Shown: positions 2,710-39,041 of the stretch, piece after piece | Numbering within the stretch: the first letter of the stretch is position 1 | Layout: each line of letters begins with the position of its first letter | DNA from: Octopus bimaculoides | Lineage: Eukaryota | Length of the DNA stretch: 39,041 bases | NCBI RefSeq assembly: GCF_001194135.2 | Contig: NC_068982.1 | Coordinates: forward strand, 127,090,830-127,129,870 | Direction of reading: 5' to 3' | Notes under the pieces: model-generated | Seen by the model: the letters and a program-made list of their open reading frames with translations, nothing else | Databases searched by the model: none | Told to the model about the DNA's origin: nothing | Program-made: the position numbers and the translations under genes

Positions 2710-3061
2710 TCAAAAATGATAAATTTTAGAAATGTATTCATAATATATTATATAACCATGTCATTGGGAAGTAAAACCTTTCATATATTGCTATTTGATT
2801 TGGACTTCTGCTATCTTGTAAGACCTAGCGTCAAGCATTAATATAAAAGTTATGCTTTAAGCCTTTATCTTTAGTATTAATTAATACAACAATGTAATGA
2901 CTCTGTTGAAAGGATTTTTTTAGCATTTCACACAAATCATTATGAAAATGAGATATTACTTCTGATAATCTCTAAGAACTGTTATGGTTGTGCTTATGAA
3001 TATTTAATTTGCTGAAAGCTGTTTGAGAAAGTGATTATGTCTAAGCAATTACAGAACTCAT

Positions 3062-3067
3062 ATAATG

Positions 3068-3143
<76 letters not shown>
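3062..3143. repeat. (AAT)n microsatellite abutting the 3' end of the Tx1-like element
   Basis: Directly visible. Confidence 0.95.
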
Positions 3144-3144
<1 letters not shown>

Positions 3145-3388
3145 TTTTTTCTTATTGGCCACCAGGGCCGAACACAAAACATAGAGGACGATACACAGAC
3201 GAGGGATAGTAAGGTTAAATGTGTAAACACCCAACACAACGTTTAACAAAGAGATTAAATCAACAATATGCTTCCTCAATAGGGGAGGAGCGCCACCGTA
3301 AAATGACCAAAGTGACCTCATGCAGTTTGGACCCCTTAACACCAAAGGCTCCTCGGAAAGGCACCCTATCTTCTTCTTTCCATCCGGC

Positions 3389-5067
3389 CTACAGGTGTAC
3401 ACTTAGAGTAGACTCATTCACGCGGGACATTCTTGCCACATTCACCCACTTTTCAACGAACTTACTGGGTGACAGTGCCTCCCTCTCCAGCCTCAATTTC
3501 CTTTTCAGGTGAAACCTGAAAAAGTCAATGAGGTCTTGGCCAAAAGGGAAGGTACCTGTCTTCAACCTTTTCAATCGCGTCCACCACACAACCTCTTTTG
3601 CCATAGCCACCAGACAAAAAAAAATTGTCCTCCCTTCTCGGCCAAAGGAAGGCAGCGGGGCGATCTTCACAATGGACTCGGACGATAGCCGGATCCGTTC
3701 TACACGTGACAATAACAGTTCGACAAAGTTCCACAAGTCAGCAATGCGCGGACACGGAACGAAAGCATCCAGAACGGTTTCATCATTCCGCGTGCATCTC
3801 GGACAACCCCGACTGAGTGCATACCCGTGCCTGTAGAGCTTATCTCGAACTGGCAGCGCCCTCCCGTAGCACTGCTAGGGCTTTCTGGAAGTTTTCCATA
3901 GTTCCCGGCACGAAAGTTCTCCGAAGAGACCAGCCAGTTGATCCCACTCGACGCCCAGGATCTCTCCGAATATGTCGTCGCTCTTGCCCTCCACTAATCC
4001 CCTATAGAACTCCAAGGTGGAAATTCCACCGACTGGGTCGCCCGTGTCAAGCGCCCTGCCTCGGATCCAGTACTGTAACTCCGTCAAGGAGATGAGCTGC
4101 GGAAAAGCGCGTTCAACAAACAGCGACCACACCTGCTCACCGTTAAGGAGATATCGTAGCTTCAACGCATGTCTAGGCATCCTCAGCCAAGCATGCCTAA
4201 TCCTCCATGTAACGAGTGCTGACAGCAAATGGACCATCGGTTATTGACGACTGCACCTGTCAACGTTCGATGCCCTAACTTGCTAAGCCGGTCTCTGAAA
4301 GCTTGATGCGCCGGGAAGGACGCGTTCCTGTATTCGGGTCCCTGGCTAGGAAGACTGTCTAGGTCAACAGTACAGATCACAAATGTGTGGTCTATCTAGT
4401 TGACGAATTCAAATTGTGGACAACCTAAGCTATTTCTATATGCTGGCCTACAAAATATTGTATCTAGATAAGATCTGGATGACCCGGCACTGTTTGCCCA
4501 TGTCCAAGCTGGAGTATTTGGGATATCTAGTCTGAATCTGTCCGCCAGCTGGAAACGACTGAGCAAGTTTGCGAGGCTTACGCACCCCGTCTTTCCTATC
4601 CGCTAGCTCACTCAATTCATACGTGCATCCAAAATAGCGTTCCAATCGCCCACTAACACTAAAGAGCGAGACATCCCTAGAAAGGCTTCCAGGTGTCTGA
4701 AGAACTCCGGTTGCCCCGATCCAGTCGGTGCGTGCACTGCGACTAGTCTAAAAGCACTGTCTTCGTTATCGTCCACGTCCAGGACCACCAACTTACCTTC
4801 CAGGTCCAGGAAAACCGACCATATCTCGAAATCCAGGCTTTTTTCTGAACAGCAGTGCCACCCCACCCCCATTCCCGGTCGACTAAGAAATGCGACTATC
4901 TCAAAGTCATCGAAAATGGGAGCCAAGGCCCGTATGTCCATGATCCTGGTCTCACTAACGGCTATTACATCCAGACTTAGCCACCTGAGGTCGTTGCACA
5001 AGCGTCCTTATTTCTACAACGACCCCAGGCTCCGTACAATTATACAACCTACTTTAAGAACCGCCAT
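3389..5067 (-). pseudogene. ORF2 relic: APE endonuclease joined to the C-terminal (zf-RVT-like) region; RT domain missing
   Basis: ATG at 5067 gives MAVLKVGCIIVRSLG...LDVIAVSETR, LVAVHAP, LVLVGDWNAILD, SYLDTIFCR (APE motifs), then GPEYRNASF (GPGYWKLN-like). After ...VNNRW it jumps to SICCQHSLHGGLGM (post-RT GGLG motif), CPRCTRNDETVLDAFVPC (CX2C..ET..C knuckle) and ...TLSVHL stop at 3389. Multiple stops and frameshifts. Confidence 0.85.
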
Positions 5068-5911
5068 GCTGGTCAGGAAGTAAAGAAACGAAAAAGGGAG
5101 AGTCACTTACCGACCTGCTGTTTGTGGTCGAGTGGTTCTCTCACCATGTCTGCTTTGTTGGGTTCCTCTGGAAACCTCCTTAAAAGCCATCTGCTGGCCG
5201 TTACACTGGTATATCCAATGTTATACGGGTAACTCCGCTCAATGCTCGTATAAGTCTCTAATGTAATTCGCACCGTCATTAGGTTCTCCGGTACCCTTAA
5301 AAGTGTTGGGGCTGCAGATCACTCTCTCTGCTTCAATGTTCTTGTTTTGTGCTATGAGAGCCATCATCCTCACTTGCACGAAGTTTCACGGCTGAACGAA
5401 TGGTTATTGTTGTTGTTGTTGTAGTGACATTTTTTTCTTTTTTAGTTTGTTGTGCTTTTGATTCTGTTGTGGATGCTTGTGATGCTTGTAATGTTGGTGT
5501 TGTCATCAGTGTATCTGTGTTTGTCGTTTCTTGGATTTCTCCCTTTTTTCTGTAACGCTTTCTTGATTTTCTTTTTCTTTTTTTTTATTTGCCTTTTGGA
5601 CTTCTCCTCCATCATCACTTGGATGCGTGGAGGAGTCAGTGTCTTGTGTGTTTTCTTCTCGTGTTGTTTGTTCTGGTTCTCTTGTAGTAGTTGTAGTTAT
5701 TGCTCCTGCTAGTGTAGCTTCTTCCACTGTTGTGGGTGCTACTCCCACTGCCACCTTCACTGTAACACCTGCATTTTTGTCTGTTTGTGTTCAATTTCTG
5801 CTTCTATTCCCCAGCCTTTCTGTTGTTGTTTTTGTCGACACGTGGGTTGTGGTGCTTTCGTTTGGACATTTCTTCCTGCCCTTCTGTTCTGGTTCTGTGG
5901 GCAAAAAACCG

Positions 5912-6581
5912 GGATCTTTGTGATTTGACGGGCAACACTTGTTTTCTTAACGAAACACTTTCAAACTTGGGACACTGGTAGAATGTGTCATATAAAACAA
6001 CTTCTTCTCTTAACCTTCTTAACAAAATTTTGTACATCGCAAGTTATTTCATGTTAAAGTTGTCGTATTTCTGTAATTTCAACCAATCACTGACGTCTAT
6101 TCAGCTGAATACAGTTAGTGCTGTTCGGTGTCAAGTGTGTTATTCCCTGTTTAATTATATCATTATTCCCTAGTAAGGGTTTAGGGTTTTAGGGTTAGGG
6201 TTCGGGTTTTAGGGTTAGGGTTTTAGGGTTAGGGTTGGGGTTAGGGTTGGGGTTAGGGTTAGGGTTAGGGTTATGGTTATGAGTTATAGGGTTAGAGTCA
6301 AGGTTATGGCAAAAATAATCATAACCCTAACCGTAATCCTAAAACTAACCCTAACTCTAAAACCCGAACCCTAACCCTAAAACCCTAAAGCTAAAACCAG
6401 TACAAACTCAGTGATTGGTTGAAATTACCGAAATACGACAATTTTTTACATGAAATAACTTCGAATACAAAATTTTTTATCTGTTCTATACCACAAAATA
6501 TACAAGTATTCGAAGTTTGAAAGTGTTTCGGTACCAAAAACACTACATAAAAAAATGTTGCCCGTAAAATCACAAAGATCC
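5912..6581. mobile_element. Non-autonomous DNA transposon (MITE, Merlin-like termini) with internal inverted telomere-like repeats, copy 1
   Basis: 26-bp TIR GGATCTTTGTGATTTGACGGGCAACA / TGTTGCCCGTAAAATCACAAAGATCC (1 mismatch). Perfect 8-bp TSD AAAAACCG (5904-5911, 6582-6589). Further internal inverted segments. Near-identical copy at 23495. Confidence 0.92.
6176..6395. repeat. Degenerate (TTAGGG)n followed by (CCCTAA)n inside the MITE
   Basis: G-rich block ~6176-6308 and C-rich block ~6322-6395. Variant units TTCGGG and TTTTAGGG are mirrored. Confidence 0.95.
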
Positions 6582-7384
6582 AAAAACCGTAAGTGGCCCG
6601 TTGAACCACCATCGTGACACCTCAGCCTTCTGCCCTCCGAGTTCACCCTTAGTTCTACTCCATTCGAGAAGGAAATCAAGTCTGGGACTTTCTCTAACTG
6701 CTCTGGCTTAACGTGGATAAGAACCTCCAAGGTAGTCCCAACCCAATTCTCCCTCCTCGATCTTTTAACATGCAGGAGATTCTCTCGTCTGTCCGTACAA
6801 ATACACGCGAGAATCCACCATAAATCCAGGCCTGGTGGGACCCCAGGTACCGTAATTCGCACCGCCCTTCTTCCCATGTGTGTTGAGAAGAGGGTGATTT
6901 CCTCGCTGGGACGCGTGGTCACCGAGTCCTGTATCGCCTGCTCCTCGGTCTTAAAAGGACCTCTACTCCACCGTACTGTCTCGCCCTCGCAATGTGGTGG
7001 ATATCCTGCCATATGTCTTTCAAGGCTTCTCCCACCTGGTCGCGTTTAGCGTTTTCATGTTTCCTTGTCTTTGTGTTCACGCACCTGTAGATAACTGTCC
7101 GTTTGGCTGTTGCTTCAAGCACGTCACTTGGATGGAGGCGTCAATTCTGCTCTCCTTCCATTCATTTTAATATATTTTGCAGCCTCGTTCAGTTTTTCTG
7201 TTTTGTTCTCCAATGAGATGTTAGCCAATTCCTTAGCTGCCACGATATTTGCAAAAGTCTCTTCCTCGCTGCTTTTTGTTAGACTCTTCGTAATTGTTGT
7301 CAGTGTAATGAGGAAGACTTTACTGCTTCCTTCCTCTCACCTTCTTTCTGCTTTTTATCTTCTTTCTTCTTTTCTTGACTTTTC

Positions 7385-10147: not shown

Positions 10148-10307
10148 AAAAGAGAGAGAGAGAGAGCTACTTGACAATATTCTGAACACATTTGTATTAC
10201 AAAACTGAATGGGAGGATGTTTTAATGAAAGTCCGAAGGTTTGTACTAATATCCTTTTGATATAACAAATATTTTCATGATAAATTAAGAAATGTGATCA
10301 AAAGATT

Positions 10308-10437
10308 GGCGGAGGTAAAGAATACGTACACCACCCGTTTTCGGCATAACAAAAAAAACCTAACCCTAATCCTAACCCTAAACCCTAACCCCTAACCCCA
10401 ACCCTAAAACCGGTTGTACGTATTCTTTACTTTCGCC
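10308..10437. mobile_element. 130-bp MITE with CCCTAA-like internal repeats
   Basis: TIR GGCGGAGGTAAAGAATACGTACA / TGTACGTATTCTTTACTTTCGCC. 9-bp TSD CAAAAGATT (10299-10307) / CAAAAGATC (10438-10446). Degenerate CCCTAA units at ~10360-10410. Confidence 0.8.
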
Positions 10438-10899
10438 CAAAAGATCATATGTAAAAGAAACAGATTTAACGAAAACATTTTTCCTCGACTCTAAATGTTT
10501 CTATAGAAATGTCTATATCTATCATTCTTAGGTAGCAAAGTTATCGAAGAATTTTACTTTTTTTTTTATTTGTCTATTACATGGATGAAAGTAAATGTTT
10601 CCATAAGCTTCAGTTTACTAAAGTTACTCTTCTCCATTTCCACAGCAACAGATGAATACATAACGTGACTACACCTCGTACATGGCACTCCAAGCGATTG
10701 CCTGAGATCCTGATACCTTTAACTGGCTCTGATAGCAAACGATCCCACATTAACGTAAACTTCTGCTGAAACACATTACTATGGGAATATCTTATTGCTT
10801 TATTTAAATTCAAAGAAATGAAAGACAACGTCCTTGGTCTCGATAAATGGTTGCGAAATACTTTCCGTTGAATCAACGATTTTTTTCGCATATGATGGT

Positions 10900-19304: not shown

Positions 19305-19632
19305 ATACTCTTTACTCTTTACTCTTTTAAATGTTTCAGTCATTTGACTGCAGCCATGCTGGAGCAGCATCTTTTAGTCGAAGAAATCGACCCCAGGAAT
19401 TTTTCTTTGTAAGCCTAGTACTTATTCTATCGGTCTCTTTTGCTGGAGCACTGCCTTAAGTCGAACACATCGAACCCAGAACTTATTCTTTGTAAGCCTA
19501 GTACTTATTCTATCAGTCGCTTTTGCTGAACTGCTGAGTTACAGGGACGTAATAAACACACCAACATCGGTTGTCAAGTGATAATGGCGGGACAAACACA
19601 GGCACACAAATACATGCATACATACATACATA

Positions 19633-22054: not shown

Positions 22055-22185
22055 ATACAACAGGCTTCTTTCAGTTTCTGTCTACTAAATCCACTGACAA
22101 GGCTTGCCCAAGGTGCCACGTAGTGGGACTGAACCCAGAACCATGTGGTTGGGAAGCAAGCTTCTTAACACACCCACACCTGCAC
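21663..22185 (-). mobile_element. SINE family B with a long internal microsatellite
   Basis: Homologous to the other B copies. Confidence 0.85.
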
Positions 22186-22199
22186 CTGTGTATGTGTGT

Positions 22200-22327
22200 G
22201 TTAAGAGGTTTGCTTCCCTACCACATGGTTTCAGGTTCGGTCTCACTGTGTGGCATGTTCAACAACCTTGGGGCTGACCAGAGCCTGGTGAGTGGATTTG
22301 GTAGACTGAAACTGAAAGAAGTTTGTC
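22200..22327 (+). mobile_element. SINE family B, 5' fragment
   Basis: TTTGCTTCCCTACCACATGGTTTCAGGTTCGGTCTCACTGTGTGG...ACTGAAACTGAAAGAAG. Confidence 0.7.
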
Positions 22328-23185: not shown

Positions 23186-23494
23186 AGTATAAATACGCTG
23201 TCATTTTATACCTTGCAATGTAGACAAAAAACTGGGATCAGCGACATTGTATAAAAGGTAAACAGTCGTTTACGATTGACTAGTATATTTGATAAATTTC
23301 TAGTTCATTTACAGCAGTCATAGACAAACTGCGGCCTGTGAAATTTTCATAATAGTGCGCCTAGCGAAAAATTACCTTGAAAGTTTTGAGGATGAGCCAT
23401 GTATCATGCGGTCTGCTTCTTGGAAAAGGTTTTCTACACCTAATTTACAACACGCAGTGTCGGCAATGGAAGGGTCGGAATCAGGGAAAGAGGC

Positions 23495-24262
23495 GGATCT
23501 TTGGGGTTTGACAGGCAACATTTGTTTTCTTAACGAAACACTTTCAAACTTGGGACACTAGTAGAATGTGTCATATAAAACAACTTCTTCTCTTAACCTT
23601 CTTAACAAAAAATTGTACATCGCAAGTTATTTCATGTTAAAGTTGTCGTATTTCTGTAATTTCAACCAATCACTGACGTCTATTCAGCTGAATACAGTTA
23701 GTGCTGTTCGGTGTCAAGTGTGTTATTCCCTGTTTAATTATATCATTATTCCCTAGTAAGGGTTTAGGATTTTAGGGTTAGGGTTCGGGTTTTAGGGTTA
23801 GGGTTGGGGTTAGGGTTGGGGTTATGGTTATGAGTTATAGGATTAGAGTTAAGGTTATGGCAAAAATNNNNNNNNNNNNNNNNNNNNNNNNNNNNNNNNN
23901 NNNNNNNNNNNNNNNNNNNNNNNNNNNNNNNNNNNNNNTAAAGCTAAAACCAGTACAAACGCACGAACGATGTCATAAATAAGAATAACACGGGTAGTTG
24001 TTGTTGACAAACAACGGGACTAATTTTATTCAAGGGAAAAGATCCCATGACACCGTTACGGCATTAATTGTTTTCACCTCAATAGACGTCAGTGATTGGT
24101 TGAAATTACCGAAATACGACAATTTTTTTACATAAAATAACTTCGAATACAAAATTTTTTATCTGTTCTATACCACAAAATATACAAATATTCGAAGTTT
24201 GAAAGTGTTTCGGTACCAAAAACACTACAAAGAAAATGTTGCCCGTCAAACCTTAAAGATCC
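23495..24262. mobile_element. Telomere-repeat MITE, copy 2
   Basis: TIR GGATCTTTGGGGTTTGACAGGCAACA / TGTTGCCCGTCAAACCTTAAAGATCC. TSD AAAGAGGC (23487-23494) / ATAGAGGC (24263-24270). TTAGGG-like block ~23760-23865, then an N gap (23868-23938). Confidence 0.9.
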
Positions 24263-24429
24263 ATAGAGGCTTCAATATCACCATCCTTCGGCGTGGTTGA
24301 ACAATCAGTCCCAACCAGTCGGAATGTATAGTAGGACCAACTCCCACATCACCCACACTTTGGTGCTTGATTCGTTCGTACAATTTAACTCTTAGGTAAT
24401 TTCATCTGGGTCGCCAATATTTTTCATCT

Positions 24430-24565: not shown

Positions 24566-27394
24566 TTATATATGTACACGCTATTGGATGGCCGTTGACT
24601 CTACAGTTTGAATATGGACCAGTGGCTGGTTAATATGCTGACAGAGGAATTAAACTTTCTAGTATTTCAGTGTTTTGTGATAGTTGCAGGAGGGTTAACT
24701 AACAATTAAGAAGACCTAAAAGTTTTATATTTAGTCTGAAGAAGTAATTACACAGCAAACAAAATCATGAGTTAATATGAATACAGATTTTTATCGCTTG
24801 TTTCCAGTTTTCATGCCTTCCCTGAGCAGACGATAATGAAGCAGAAATGTATCTAATAGACGACATATTGGTAATAAAGGGAGAGGCGGAGGAGGAGGGG
24901 TAGAGGAAGGGATGAGCGGATGGGGAAGTATGGGGGAATAGGGAAGAGGGCGGTGAGAAAGTGTGGTGTGAAAGAAAAAAGATTGTGATACATGGTTGAG
25001 AAATAGAGAAGGATGTAAGAAAATTGGGGAAGGAATAGAAAAGATGAAGCAGCGAGAGAAGACTGAGTGAAGCGAAGAGAATAGAGTGAAGCGAAGAGAA
25101 TGTGTATAAGAGGGAAAAGAGAAAGAGTGTAGAGCGAAAGAGGAAGGAAGAGGGAGAATAGAAAAACATAACGGGAAGAAGGGGGTAATAGGGACAGGTG
25201 GAGAGAGAAAGTTGAAATTGGGAAGGAGCGAAAGAGCAGATTGGGATAAGGAGTGGATTAAGAAACAAACACAAGTAACAAAGAAAAGAAAAGAATTTGA
25301 GAACAGAAAAGCGTGAGAAGTTGAGCTTTATCAGTATTCATTAATTTTGCCCGTCATTATCCAATATATAATTTAACTGGCTTAGCTACGTACGATAGAG
25401 ACCCTCTGCTACTTGCTAAGACAAACAGACCATGTATCTCTGATGACCGATTAAATCTCTCATTCTCTCCTTTTCATTTCCGCATGCACGCATGCACGCA
25501 CGCACTCACCCGCACATGTACACACGCACGCACGCACGCACTCACACAGACACACACACACACACGCACACAAAAGCATATTTGTATATATGTTATATAT
25601 ACATGTATGAATGTGTGTGCGTGTATATATATATATATATATATATAAATTGTACAAAAACGCAATAGAGGATAATAAAACATTCGGACAAATAGACGAT
25701 ACTAAGGTGATACAAGGCAAAAACAGACGGGTCATTTGTGGCCTTCTTTCCTGTCAAGTACCAGAAGTCACGACCGTTTCGGGCAGTTACACTCGAGACG
25801 GTTCGATCTGGTTGCCCCTAAAATGTCTAAGCTGGAGTTAGAGGTTAAGTAACCATCTAAGGGATATTAAACATCCAATGTACTACTGGATGTATACCTA
25901 TGTATTTGTATCCAAGGGCTTACTATTGCAGGGCAATATCGCAATTGAATACTAGGTATGGGTGGGGGTAAATTGGAAATTTACCCAGGATTTATAAGGC
26001 AAATAACAAAATGGAAAGGATAAACAATCGACAAATATCAGCCTGTAAACATTCAATTACATCTATTTCTTAATTGATTACAACCATATGTGTAAGTGAT
26101 CCAAATTAAAAAAAATGAAATGAGCAAATAAATAAGTAAATAAAAATAAGCGAATAAAAATAGATGAGTGTACAAATAATAAACTCTTACAGCTGTTTTT
26201 AACACGAGGCTGCCAAATCTTCCAAGTTTTCCACATCACGCCAGTGATATACAGGGATGAACAAACACTGTACAGGGGTTGGACACTGGTTGAGCCCCAA
26301 GACTTCATCAGAGAGAGACCAAATGTTAAGAAACTAACATGTGGGAAAGTAAGTTAAAATAATAAAGTAACGTAAAATAAAAATAAAAGTAATGTAACCA
26401 AAATAGTAAGGAATGGTAAGAACGTCATTTCAAGGTGCTATCATAATCCATGGTATTACATTTTATGGTAAAGAAAGTCACTTCCAGGAGGAATTTCCGC
26501 AGGCTGTGAAGGTTACATTGTGCTTCAATTATACCGGGGGAAATAGCGAGGGTAAGATGTTGTGTAAAAGAGTTTGATGGTATGATCCATGTCACAGGGG
26601 TCAGAAGTTAGAGGCTAACTGCTATTTAATAGAGCATTATAAAAGGAATTGGCAGAATTAACTTAAATTGAACCTGTTTGGAGAAATTTAATACGTAAGT
26701 ATATCAATGAAAAAAAAATTAGGTAAAACCTTAGTGCGATGTTGTTATTTATTAACAGAAACTTAATCCCAATATCCATATGGGTAGTAGGGTGAGGTCA
26801 AAGTTAATCCTATAACTTAATTGGTCAGCTAATATTTGAAAACAATGGCGTTGTTCAGGTCCGTTAAAACAATAAATAAAGTACAAGACAAGTAAAAACA
26901 AAAATAAAATGATTCTCGGCCCGGACTATGTATTGTGACTTTTTACCATGACTTTTTGCCATGACAACCGCTGTGTATTGTGACTTGTTACCATGACAAC
27001 CGCACGTTGTGTTGTGTTCCACACGCAGACCACGAAATTTACTTCACCTGCGTGTTTTGTTTTAACGAAAATTTATATTTATCAATAAGAACTTTATTAT
27101 AAATTTTTTTGCCAAATGTCTTAATATTTTACATATTTTTCATATATAGCAAAAGTTGTTTACGATGTTTATGCAGTTTCTTGGCATTACGAAGGTGAAT
27201 GGAATATGTGAACTTAGTACAGATAATTTGACATTATTCTTGAATTCTGCATGCAAAAACATATAAGATACAGGTATTCTTTTTCTTGGGACACATTCTT
27301 TGTTGACCAGTGTTATCCTTATCCTAGTTTACAAATCCAAACATAAAAACGTTACTCAACTTTGAAGTTTTGGAGACAGACGTCCCCATTTCAC

Positions 27395-34957: not shown

Positions 34958-35322
34958 GGCGGTGAGCTAGCAGAATCGTCAGTACTCAGGGCAAAATATT
35001 TAAAGCAACAAATTCGCCCATCTTTACGTTCTGAGTTCAAATTTCGCCGAGGTCAAATTTGCGTTTCATCCTTTCGGATTCGATAAAATAAGTACCAGTT
35101 GAACACTGGGGTCAATGTAATCGACTAGTCCTTTCCTCAAAATTTCAGACCTTGTGCCTTTGCTAGAAAGGGTTATCATTATTATTATCATTATTCCGCC
35201 GAGGTCGACTTTATCCTTCATTCTTTCGGGCTCGATAAAATAAGTACCAGCTAAACACTGGGATCGATATAATTGATTTATCCCCTCCCCCAATTTTCTG
35301 GCTTTGTGCCAAAATTTCAAAC

Positions 35323-35382
<60 letters not shown>

Positions 35383-38720: not shown

Positions 38721-38738
38721 TTCTTTAAAAGAAAAATC

Positions 38739-39041
38739 GGATCTTTTTTAAAACGGGGGCCACATTTTTCATTAACGAAACACTTTGAAACTTGGAACAC
38801 TGGTAGAATGTGTCATATAAAACATCCTTTTCTCTTAGTCTTCTTTAAAAAAAAAGAAATCCATAAATTATTCCATGTTAAAGTTGTCGTATTTCTGTAA
38901 TTTCAACCAATCACTGACGTCCATTCAGCCGATATACATTAAGTGCCGACTACATAAACAAACGATTCTGAAACAATTAATCCTAACCCTAACCCTAACT
39001 CTAACCCTAACCCTAACCCTAGGGTTAGGGTTAGGGTTAGG
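38739..39041. mobile_element. Telomere-repeat MITE, diverged copy 3 (truncated by the window end)
   Basis: Starts GGATCTTTTT... The left arm is homologous to copies 1 and 2 (CGAAACACTTTGAAACTTGG...TTGTCGTATTTCTGTAATTTCAACCAATCACTGACGTC), then (CCCTAA)n|(TTAGGG)n at 38982-39041. Confidence 0.85.

Follow-up and report, generated by a model that had tools for sequence, protein, structure and literature searches.

A 39,041-nucleotide stretch of Octopus bimaculoides DNA (NCBI RefSeq assembly GCF_001194135.2, contig NC_068982.1, positions 127,090,830 to 127,129,870 of the forward strand), referred to here as the window, very probably holds a family of non-autonomous, cut-and-paste foldback miniature inverted-repeat transposable elements (MITEs) that carry inverted telomere-type arrays as the innermost part of their arms, with the cassette formed by these arrays moving together with the element. 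The family (family 1) was compared among its copies within the 39-kb window, two of them complete and one a half copy. Its copies are built as one long, diverged inverted repeat with GGATCTTT... termini, arms of ~260 bp that contain a nearly invariant 42-nt subterminal block and, innermost, two inverted, degenerate arrays of telomere-type hexamers on either side of a short loop. The window contains 34 telomere-type 12-mers (at most one mismatch), where 0.12 would be expected, and all telomere-like loci in the 39 kb (4 of 4) lie inside GG-ended inverted-repeat elements with flanking duplications. The copies of family 1 are as follows.

5912 to 6581, plus strand: copy 1, foldback MITE of 670 bp, a deletion derivative from which ~125 bp of the inner right arm is gone
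23495 to 24262, plus strand: copy 2, 768 bp with full-length arms; left arm identical to copy 1 at 257 of 264 positions, right arm at 166 of 173
38739 to 39041, plus strand: copy 3, diverged subfamily with the GGATCTTT terminus, running into the window end

The three copies, their unrelated flanks, the lengths of the complete ones (670 and 768 bp) and their non-coding nature agree with what is expected of a MITE. The copies related to copy 1 that an earlier note on this DNA, made from the sequence alone, had placed at 23495 and 38739 were both recovered, and an nhmmer profile of the arms run over the window returned only the five known arms and no further family member.

Copy 1 is bounded on both sides by a terminal inverted repeat (TIR) and a target-site duplication (TSD).

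5904 to 5911, no strand: left TSD of copy 1, AAAAACCG, identical to 6582-6589
5912 to 5944, plus strand: left TIR of copy 1, GGATCTTTGTGATTTGACGGGCAACACTTGTTT, 33 nt, 91% complementary to 6549-6581
6549 to 6581, minus strand: right TIR of copy 1, 33 nt, 91% against the left TIR
6582 to 6589, no strand: right TSD of copy 1, AAAAACCG, identical to 5904-5911

The outermost 26 nt of the two TIRs agree at 25 of 26 positions (GGATCTTTGTGATTT(G/T)ACGGGCAACA) and give the element GG...CC ends, and these termini recur in copy 2. The TSD matches at 8 of 8 positions and stops at 8, with no ninth base pair. Hence the 670-bp element with GG...CC TIRs and a perfect 8-bp TSD that the earlier note had described is present, with its coordinates corrected by at most 1 nt. 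Open reading frames (ORFs) lying wholly within the element do not exceed 62 aa, longer ones extending into the flanks, and the 62-aa ORF of the left arm found no candidate homologue in a collection of 5.8 billion proteins.

The centre of copy 1 consists of two telomere-type arrays of opposite orientation around a short loop.

6176 to ~6308, plus strand: G-strand array of copy 1, TTTAGGG TTTTAGGG TTAGGG TTCGGG TTTTAGGG TTAGGG ...
6309 to 6319, no strand: loop at the palindrome centre of copy 1, GCAAAAATAAT, 11 nt, flanked by GGTTATG and CATAACC
6320 to 6398, plus strand: C-strand array of copy 1, mirroring the outer G-strand array and shorter than it

Units of the G-strand array decay toward the centre of the element. 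In the outer portion, a stretch of 43 nt (6180-6222 versus 6347-6389) is 98% complementary, with one mismatch, and includes an exact mirrored run of 33 nt (6180-6212 versus 6357-6389) whose variant units follow one order on both sides, TTTAGGG TTTTAGGG TTAGGG TTCGGG TTTTAG... Over 5000 shuffles of the unit order in the two arrays, the longest run in common had a mean of 16.9 nt and a maximum of 32 nt, so that 33 nt was attained in 0 of 5000 shuffles. The mirrored unit order of the two arrays is beyond chance. The (TTAGGG)n then (CCCTAA)n core with mirrored variants had been noticed before, at coordinates within 1 nt of ours, and had been read as a foldback rather than a chromosome-end fusion, a reading borne out by the mirrored units and by the arms, TIRs and TSDs present at two loci. 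Such a mirrored order of non-canonical units would require that a single array was duplicated in inverse orientation or that the arms converted each other, and would exclude both two independent telomerase additions and a fusion of two different telomeres as its source.

The inverted symmetry extends well beyond the arrays. Copy 1 contains inverted segments at 6056-6093 and 6408-6445 (95% identity) and at 5942-5999 and 6482-6539 (78%), and the symmetry of its arms is uneven: the TIRs match at 91%, an 18-nt segment (CGAAACACTTTCAAACTT) is perfect, a 38-nt block reaches 95% and the remainder lies at 70-78%. In copy 2, which is full length, homology between the left and the right arm continues as far as the arrays, although the arms have diverged, with ~84% identity at aligned positions and many indels. 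Folded as single-stranded DNA, copy 1 forms one long hairpin of -173.7 kcal/mol, compared with -63.8 for shuffled sequences (z = -23). The entire element is therefore a diverged palindrome up to the arrays rather than a conventional MITE into which a palindrome was inserted. The earlier proposal that the cassette is nested in inverted segments of the arms stands as far as the segments themselves are concerned, but the element around the cassette is no ordinary one, the whole of it being palindromic. Coincidental inverted repeats were considered as a source of this arrangement and rejected.

Conservation along the arms was assessed in an alignment (A1) of all five arms of the three copies, in which one subterminal block is nearly invariant across the arms of copies 1-3.

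6056 to 6097, plus strand: most conserved subterminal block, AAAGTTGTCGTATTTCTGTAATTTCAACCAATCACTGACGTC, 42 nt, 95% to 6408-6445, comprising invariant columns of A1
6408 to 6445, minus strand: inverted conserved subterminal block of the right arm, 95% to 6056-6093

By analogy with other TIR elements, the conserved subterminal blocks are likely candidate transposase-binding sites. We also observed within the block a CCAAT box beside a TGACGTC motif resembling a cAMP response element (CAACCAATCACTGACGTC; 6081-6097 and 6408-6420), which is found in copies 2 and 3 as well and for which a transposase-binding or a promoter-like role is possible.

Whether the arrays travel with the element can be judged from copy 2, which is 95-97% identical to copy 1 and lies in unrelated flanking sequence.

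23487 to 23494, no strand: left TSD of copy 2, AAAGAGGC, 7 of 8 positions matching 24263-24270
23759 to 23867, plus strand: G-strand array of copy 2, variant units as in copy 1, about 36 nt shorter
23868 to 23938, no strand: assembly gap of 71 N, placed precisely at the centre of the copy 2 palindrome
24263 to 24270, no strand: right TSD of copy 2, ATAGAGGC, 7 of 8 positions matching 23487-23494

In alignment A1 the sequence shared by copies 1-3 starts exactly at GGATC, and that shared by copies 1 and 2 stops at GATCC. The TSD of copy 2 is 8 bp long and does not extend to 9, so that the 8-bp duplication expected from the earlier note is found at both complete copies (8/8 and 7/8; n=2). The G-strand arrays of the two copies align with 102 matches, 3 mismatches and 36 gap positions. 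Copies 1 and 2 also have a degenerate centre in common, GGTTATGGTTATGAGTTATAGG.TTAGAGT.AAGGTTATGGCAAAAAT, up to the gap in copy 2, and beyond the gap, from 23939 on, the sequence continues as in copy 1 with the last part of the C-strand array (TAAAGCTAAAACC). Because variant units and centre are shared, the arrays must already have been present before both insertions. The cassette is thus part of the mobile unit and was inherited with the element in copies 1 and 2; since their insertion only array length has drifted. Comparison of the copies and of their arms indicates that this change in length occurred by slippage after insertion.

It is extremely unlikely that there is no mobile cassette here and that the arrays are instead relics of telomere fusion, repeats inserted between inverted repeats during repair, or artefacts of short-read assembly. 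The order (TTAGGG)n(CCCTAA)n is indeed that of a head-to-head fusion, and the draft is gapped, a run of N filling the middle of copy 2 and the window stopping inside the palindrome of copy 3. However, homologous arms at three loci begin at the same nucleotide, TIRs and TSDs are present at both complete copies, and the same variant units and centre recur at two loci whose sequences are set apart by substitutions and by array length. Moreover, copy 1 was assembled without gaps, and in both copies the left arm is of another sequence type than the right arm, which would not result from a fold-back assembly artefact. A chromosome-fusion relic in particular was rejected, the same arms and cassette being found at two loci with TIRs and TSDs.

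We propose the following mechanism for the mobile foldback family. A transposase supplied in trans would recognize the termini and the conserved subterminal block and would make staggered 8-bp cuts at the target; insertion creates an 8-bp target duplication, as seen at both complete copies. As to the origin of the foldback, a half element with an internal break may have gained an array of telomere type there, whether made by telomerase or captured as the break was repaired, and may then have been palindromized by fold-back priming and repair or by sister-end joining, a step that would provide two inward-facing ends usable by the transposase. This half-element history is the simplest because homology of the arms reaches as far as the arrays. 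The junction in copy 3 (CCCTAGGG) is as would be expected from joining with 2-4 nt of microhomology, and the seeds (..GTAAGGG, ..ACCGG) together with the inward-running G-strand in copies 1 and 2 and in a small unrelated MITE (10308-10437, described below) would fit a first array made by telomerase.

A related alternative is that telomerase made the whole cassette: the hairpin or cruciform centre of a foldback MITE that already existed was cleaved, both 3' ends were extended with TTAGGG, and the ends were rejoined head to head. The G-strand runs 5' to 3' from the arm to the centre in copies 1 and 2 and in the 10308-10437 MITE, the unique sequence ends at the telomere-like seeds just named, and short interstitial telomeric repeats are known to be inserted at double-strand-break repair (PMC7215372). 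We nevertheless consider this alternative unlikely, since independent extensions would not mirror the order of variant units (0/5000 shuffles), the G-strand of copy 3 enters the arm, and arm homology right up to the arrays fits joint duplication of arm and array.

Several observations weigh against the account of a mobile foldback family with a half-element origin. Some of them come from copy 3.

38978 to 39020, plus strand: C-strand array of copy 3, polarity reversed relative to copies 1 and 2
39021 to 39041, plus strand: G-strand array of copy 3, a perfect palindrome with 39001-39020, ending at the window end

The L-type arm of copy 3 is ~85% identical to those of the other copies over 180 bp, the invariant block included. 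After this shared arm, copy 3 has a different inner segment of 30 nt, then (CCCTAA)7 and then (TTAGGG)n, so that only its outer arm is common with copies 1 and 2. On either side of the junction the palindrome is perfect for 20 nt or more, as far as the window reaches. The G-strand of copy 3 runs into the arm, an orientation for which extension of a broken arm by telomerase gives no explanation, and the perfect palindrome at the window end could be a contig-end artefact of the assembly. The earlier statement that the cassette moves accordingly holds for copies 1 and 2, but copy 3, with its opposite polarity, is not the same cassette simply moved. As a further observation, the assembly breaks exactly at palindrome centres, at the 71-N gap in copy 2 and at the window end (39041) in copy 3, and such elements probably fragment short-read assemblies.

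The remaining points concern the transposase, the distribution of the family and the symmetry of the arrays. Because no transposase-like ORF or autonomous element was found within the window, we infer both the superfamily and the mobilization in trans. A 19-mer from the conserved block gave only chance matches of 19-24 bp against metagenome, viral and prokaryote-genome contigs. Finally, symmetry reaches 98% in the outer 43 nt of the arrays, compared with ~84% for the arms at aligned positions (P ~0.005 for at most one mismatch in 43 at 16% divergence), and a single ancient palindromization does not explain this difference without later homogenization between the arrays or constraint.

The same excess of symmetry would be expected if the arrays were kept for the benefit of the element or the host, either by recruiting telomere proteins that protect or pair the foldback or by serving as seeds of new telomeres, and two subfamilies, as well as one MITE family unrelated to them, possess arrays. 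However, the conservation of non-canonical mirrored units (TTCGGG, TTTTAGGG) points to descent or conversion over selection for TTAGGG, array length differs freely from copy to copy, and the units nearer the centre have degenerated. We regard such maintenance as improbable. Most likely the arrays are passengers with structural effects, namely hairpin or cruciform potential, G-quadruplex motifs and assembly breaks.

A second, sequence-unrelated MITE in the window also carries a telomere-type array.

10299 to 10307 and 10438 to 10446, no strand: flanking direct repeat of the second MITE, CAAAAGATT and CAAAAGATC, 8 of 9 positions matching
10308 to 10437, plus strand: second MITE, 130 bp, sequence-unrelated to family 1, with a 23-nt TIR GGCGGAGGTAAAGAATACGTACA (21 of 23) and GGCGG...CGCC ends
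10355 to 10408, plus strand: (CCCTAA-like)n array in a single orientation, inside the second MITE and adjoining its right TIR

Membership of 10308-10437 in family 1 was ruled out, as the arm profile found no match there; the two families share a GG end and a telomere array only. With an opposite-polarity subfamily and an unrelated GG-ended MITE that holds a one-orientation array, the acquisition of arrays seems to have been recurrent. A broader and at present doubtful proposal is that arrays were repeatedly acquired in this genome at the centres of GG-ended foldback MITEs through break healing and fold-back repair and that MITEs are the main spreader of interstitial telomeric sequence. If this were true, hundreds or thousands of sites that are prone to hairpins and G-quadruplexes, bind telomere proteins and could seed new telomeres would lie across the chromosomes, and the well-kept outer units of the arrays might persist because they are useful to the element. 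We also observed that the four insertion sites are A-rich on their 5' side (5904-5911 AAAAACCG, 23487-23494 AAAGAGGC, 38731-38738 GAAAAATC and 10299-10307 CAAAAGATT). This hints at a target preference, on sites too few to judge.

The earlier note had favored the Merlin superfamily. Merlin elements are characterized by 5'-GG termini, a TSD of 8 or 9 bp and TIRs of 24-462 bp (PMC8101967). GG termini are present in family 1 (GGATC...GATCC, copies 1-3) and in the second MITE (GGCGG...CGCC), the TIRs of both MITE families fall within the 24-462 bp range, and the TSDs, on three of which the fit rests, measure 8 bp at the two complete copies of family 1 and 9 bp (8/9) at the second MITE. On these features Merlin is the most compatible, if putative, superfamily. 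It is possible, though somewhat unlikely, that the element is of the same kind but belongs to Foldback/MULE (Phantom-type) or to another superfamily with 8-bp TSDs, such as hAT. Termini of hAT elements usually start with YARNG and those of P elements with CATG, and an 8-bp TSD fits hAT. The TSD length of family 1 fits both hAT and P, but its termini are GGATCTTT and do not begin with YARNG, GGATC differing from both the hAT and the P ends. A serious alternative is Foldback/MULE, whose elements have long composite inverted arms made in part of tandem repeats that vary in number between arms and between copies; family 1 has long diverged arms, homologous over ~260 bp, and its innermost tandem arrays differ in length between arms and between copies. 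In the Foldback/MULE element Tm1 the TIRs are composites of tandem repeats of 13-15 bp, some members are MITE-like and the TSD measures 8-10 bp (PMC3169594). However, Foldback/MULE TSDs are mostly 9 bp (PMC3169594), and both complete copies here have exactly 8, which is inside the range of 8-10 and off the usual 9. The GG terminus, moreover, is a stated hallmark of Merlin (PMC8101967).

Copy 1 probably lies within the remains of a long interspersed nuclear element (LINE).

3000 to 7045, minus strand: decayed LINE, its upstream ORF1-like frame interrupted by copy 1

In silico excision of copy 1 together with one TSD left a minus-strand frame open across the junction for 187 aa, and this frame sits upstream of the endonuclease and zf-RVT remnants of the LINE. 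The frame and its position are consistent with insertion of copy 1 into a decayed LINE. A homologue search with the reconstructed pre-insertion ORF was empty, and no real empty paralogue or orthologue was found. The zf-RVT remnant is at 3392-3874 (E = 6e-5) and the endonuclease remnant, homologues of which carry PF03372, at 4615-5007; the reverse-transcriptase core seems to be missing. Matches to the endonuclease ORF were only fragments, at 52-78% identity, in unrelated samples. Among proteins similar to this endonuclease, we noted a 73-aa protein labelled Escherichia coli (P0006) that is 78% identical to it and is probably animal DNA contaminating a bacterial record.

The window as a whole is a gapped draft assembly with six N runs, ~36% G+C, very many microsatellites and one decayed LINE. 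G-quadruplex motifs, defined as four runs of at least three G with loops of 1-7 nt, occupy the following intervals, four of the five falling in telomere-type arrays of the MITEs.

6177 to 6270, plus strand: G-quadruplex motif in the G-strand array of copy 1
6363 to 6385, minus strand: G-quadruplex motif from the motif scan
10376 to 10404, minus strand: G-quadruplex motif from the motif scan
23775 to 23821, plus strand: G-quadruplex motif from the motif scan
24922 to 24950, plus strand: G-quadruplex motif from the motif scan

Neither Rfam at the gathering threshold nor a tRNA search gave a match in the window. Dispersed repeats resembling short interspersed nuclear elements (SINEs) occur at 22114-22255, 19357-19528 and 35065-35347, and include one inverted dimer, a hairpin with 66-nt arms, and two tandem duplications. 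These repeats may correspond to the tRNA-derived SINEs of octopus, which they resemble. A full-text search of the literature with the SINE-like sequence strings matched nothing.

Interstitial telomeric sequence is usually taken as the scar of a fusion or of break repair, and transposition by mobile elements is listed only as a possible source in a review of the subject (PMC6410037). Here the spread by a mobile element is seen at the nucleotide level, in a carrier bounded by TIRs and TSDs and with two insertions that share array variants. Our analysis extends the earlier reading by a foldback that comprises the whole element, a subfamily of opposite polarity and a second array-bearing MITE family. 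If the family is abundant, signals from telomere-probe fluorescence in situ hybridization and telomere-motif hits that are used to find fusions or chromosome ends in this lineage would have to be re-read, dispersed palindromes and G-quadruplex DNA would bring fragile sites and assembly gaps, and the copies would make it possible to ask in a natural setting whether telomere repeats inside chromosomes attract telomere proteins or give rise to new telomeres. The three array configurations (G-to-C, C-to-G and single) provide a handle on the birth of foldback MITEs.

Known systems share some of these features. The fusion-type interstitial telomeric sequence at human 2q13 has the same head-to-head (TTAGGG)n(CCCTAA)n order and degenerate units (PMC6410037). 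It is a single-locus scar between two subtelomeres, whereas the arrays described here occur at multiple loci with TIRs, TSDs and mirrored units, and we did not find the single, unrepeated junction between two different flanks that marks a fusion. Telomeric repeats inserted at double-strand-break repair form short internal arrays and are a possible source of the first array in a broken element (PMC7215372). They are single-orientation, locus-specific and immobile, whereas here the array was copied with a transposon. Several mobile elements are physically tied to telomere repeats, namely ciliate TBE1 and Tel-1, Athena/PLEs and TRAS/SART. In these the repeats are terminal or are the insertion target; here they are central in a TIR element, and the terminal telomere repeats of ciliate TBE/Tel-1 elements have no counterpart, the termini being unique sequence. 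Bivalve elements of the pearl/DTC84 type are Helitron-like, are linked to Helentrons and lack TIR-plus-TSD ends. They are also short, non-autonomous and MITE-like and disperse internal tandem repeats together with a microsatellite (PMC7492417). Their repeats are satellite monomers that are not telomeric and form no palindrome.

Two further comparisons are with Merlin MITEs and with foldback elements. Merlin MITEs, which are IS1595/IS1016-related DNA transposons of animals, are alike in their GG ends, 8-9-bp TSD, TIR length and occurrence as short non-coding derivatives, but no Merlin transposase partner was found in the window, and central inverted telomere-type arrays are not a described feature of them in the retrieved literature. 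More generally, our full-text literature searches found no TIR element with a central mirrored telomere-repeat cassette, the Repbase and Dfam catalogues being outside the search. Foldback elements (Drosophila FB, Tetris and nematode Tm1; Mutator/Phantom-related) likewise consist as a whole of a long inverted repeat with variable tandem repeats, and they include MITE-like members and have TSDs of 8-10 bp (PMC3169594). Their repeats are element-specific units of 10-31 bp or longer that extend through most of the arm, whereas those of the octopus family are host-type telomere hexamers confined to the centre, with a TSD of 8 bp compared with the usual Foldback 9. The finding is real, and the family is a variant of the tandem-repeat-bearing foldback MITEs.

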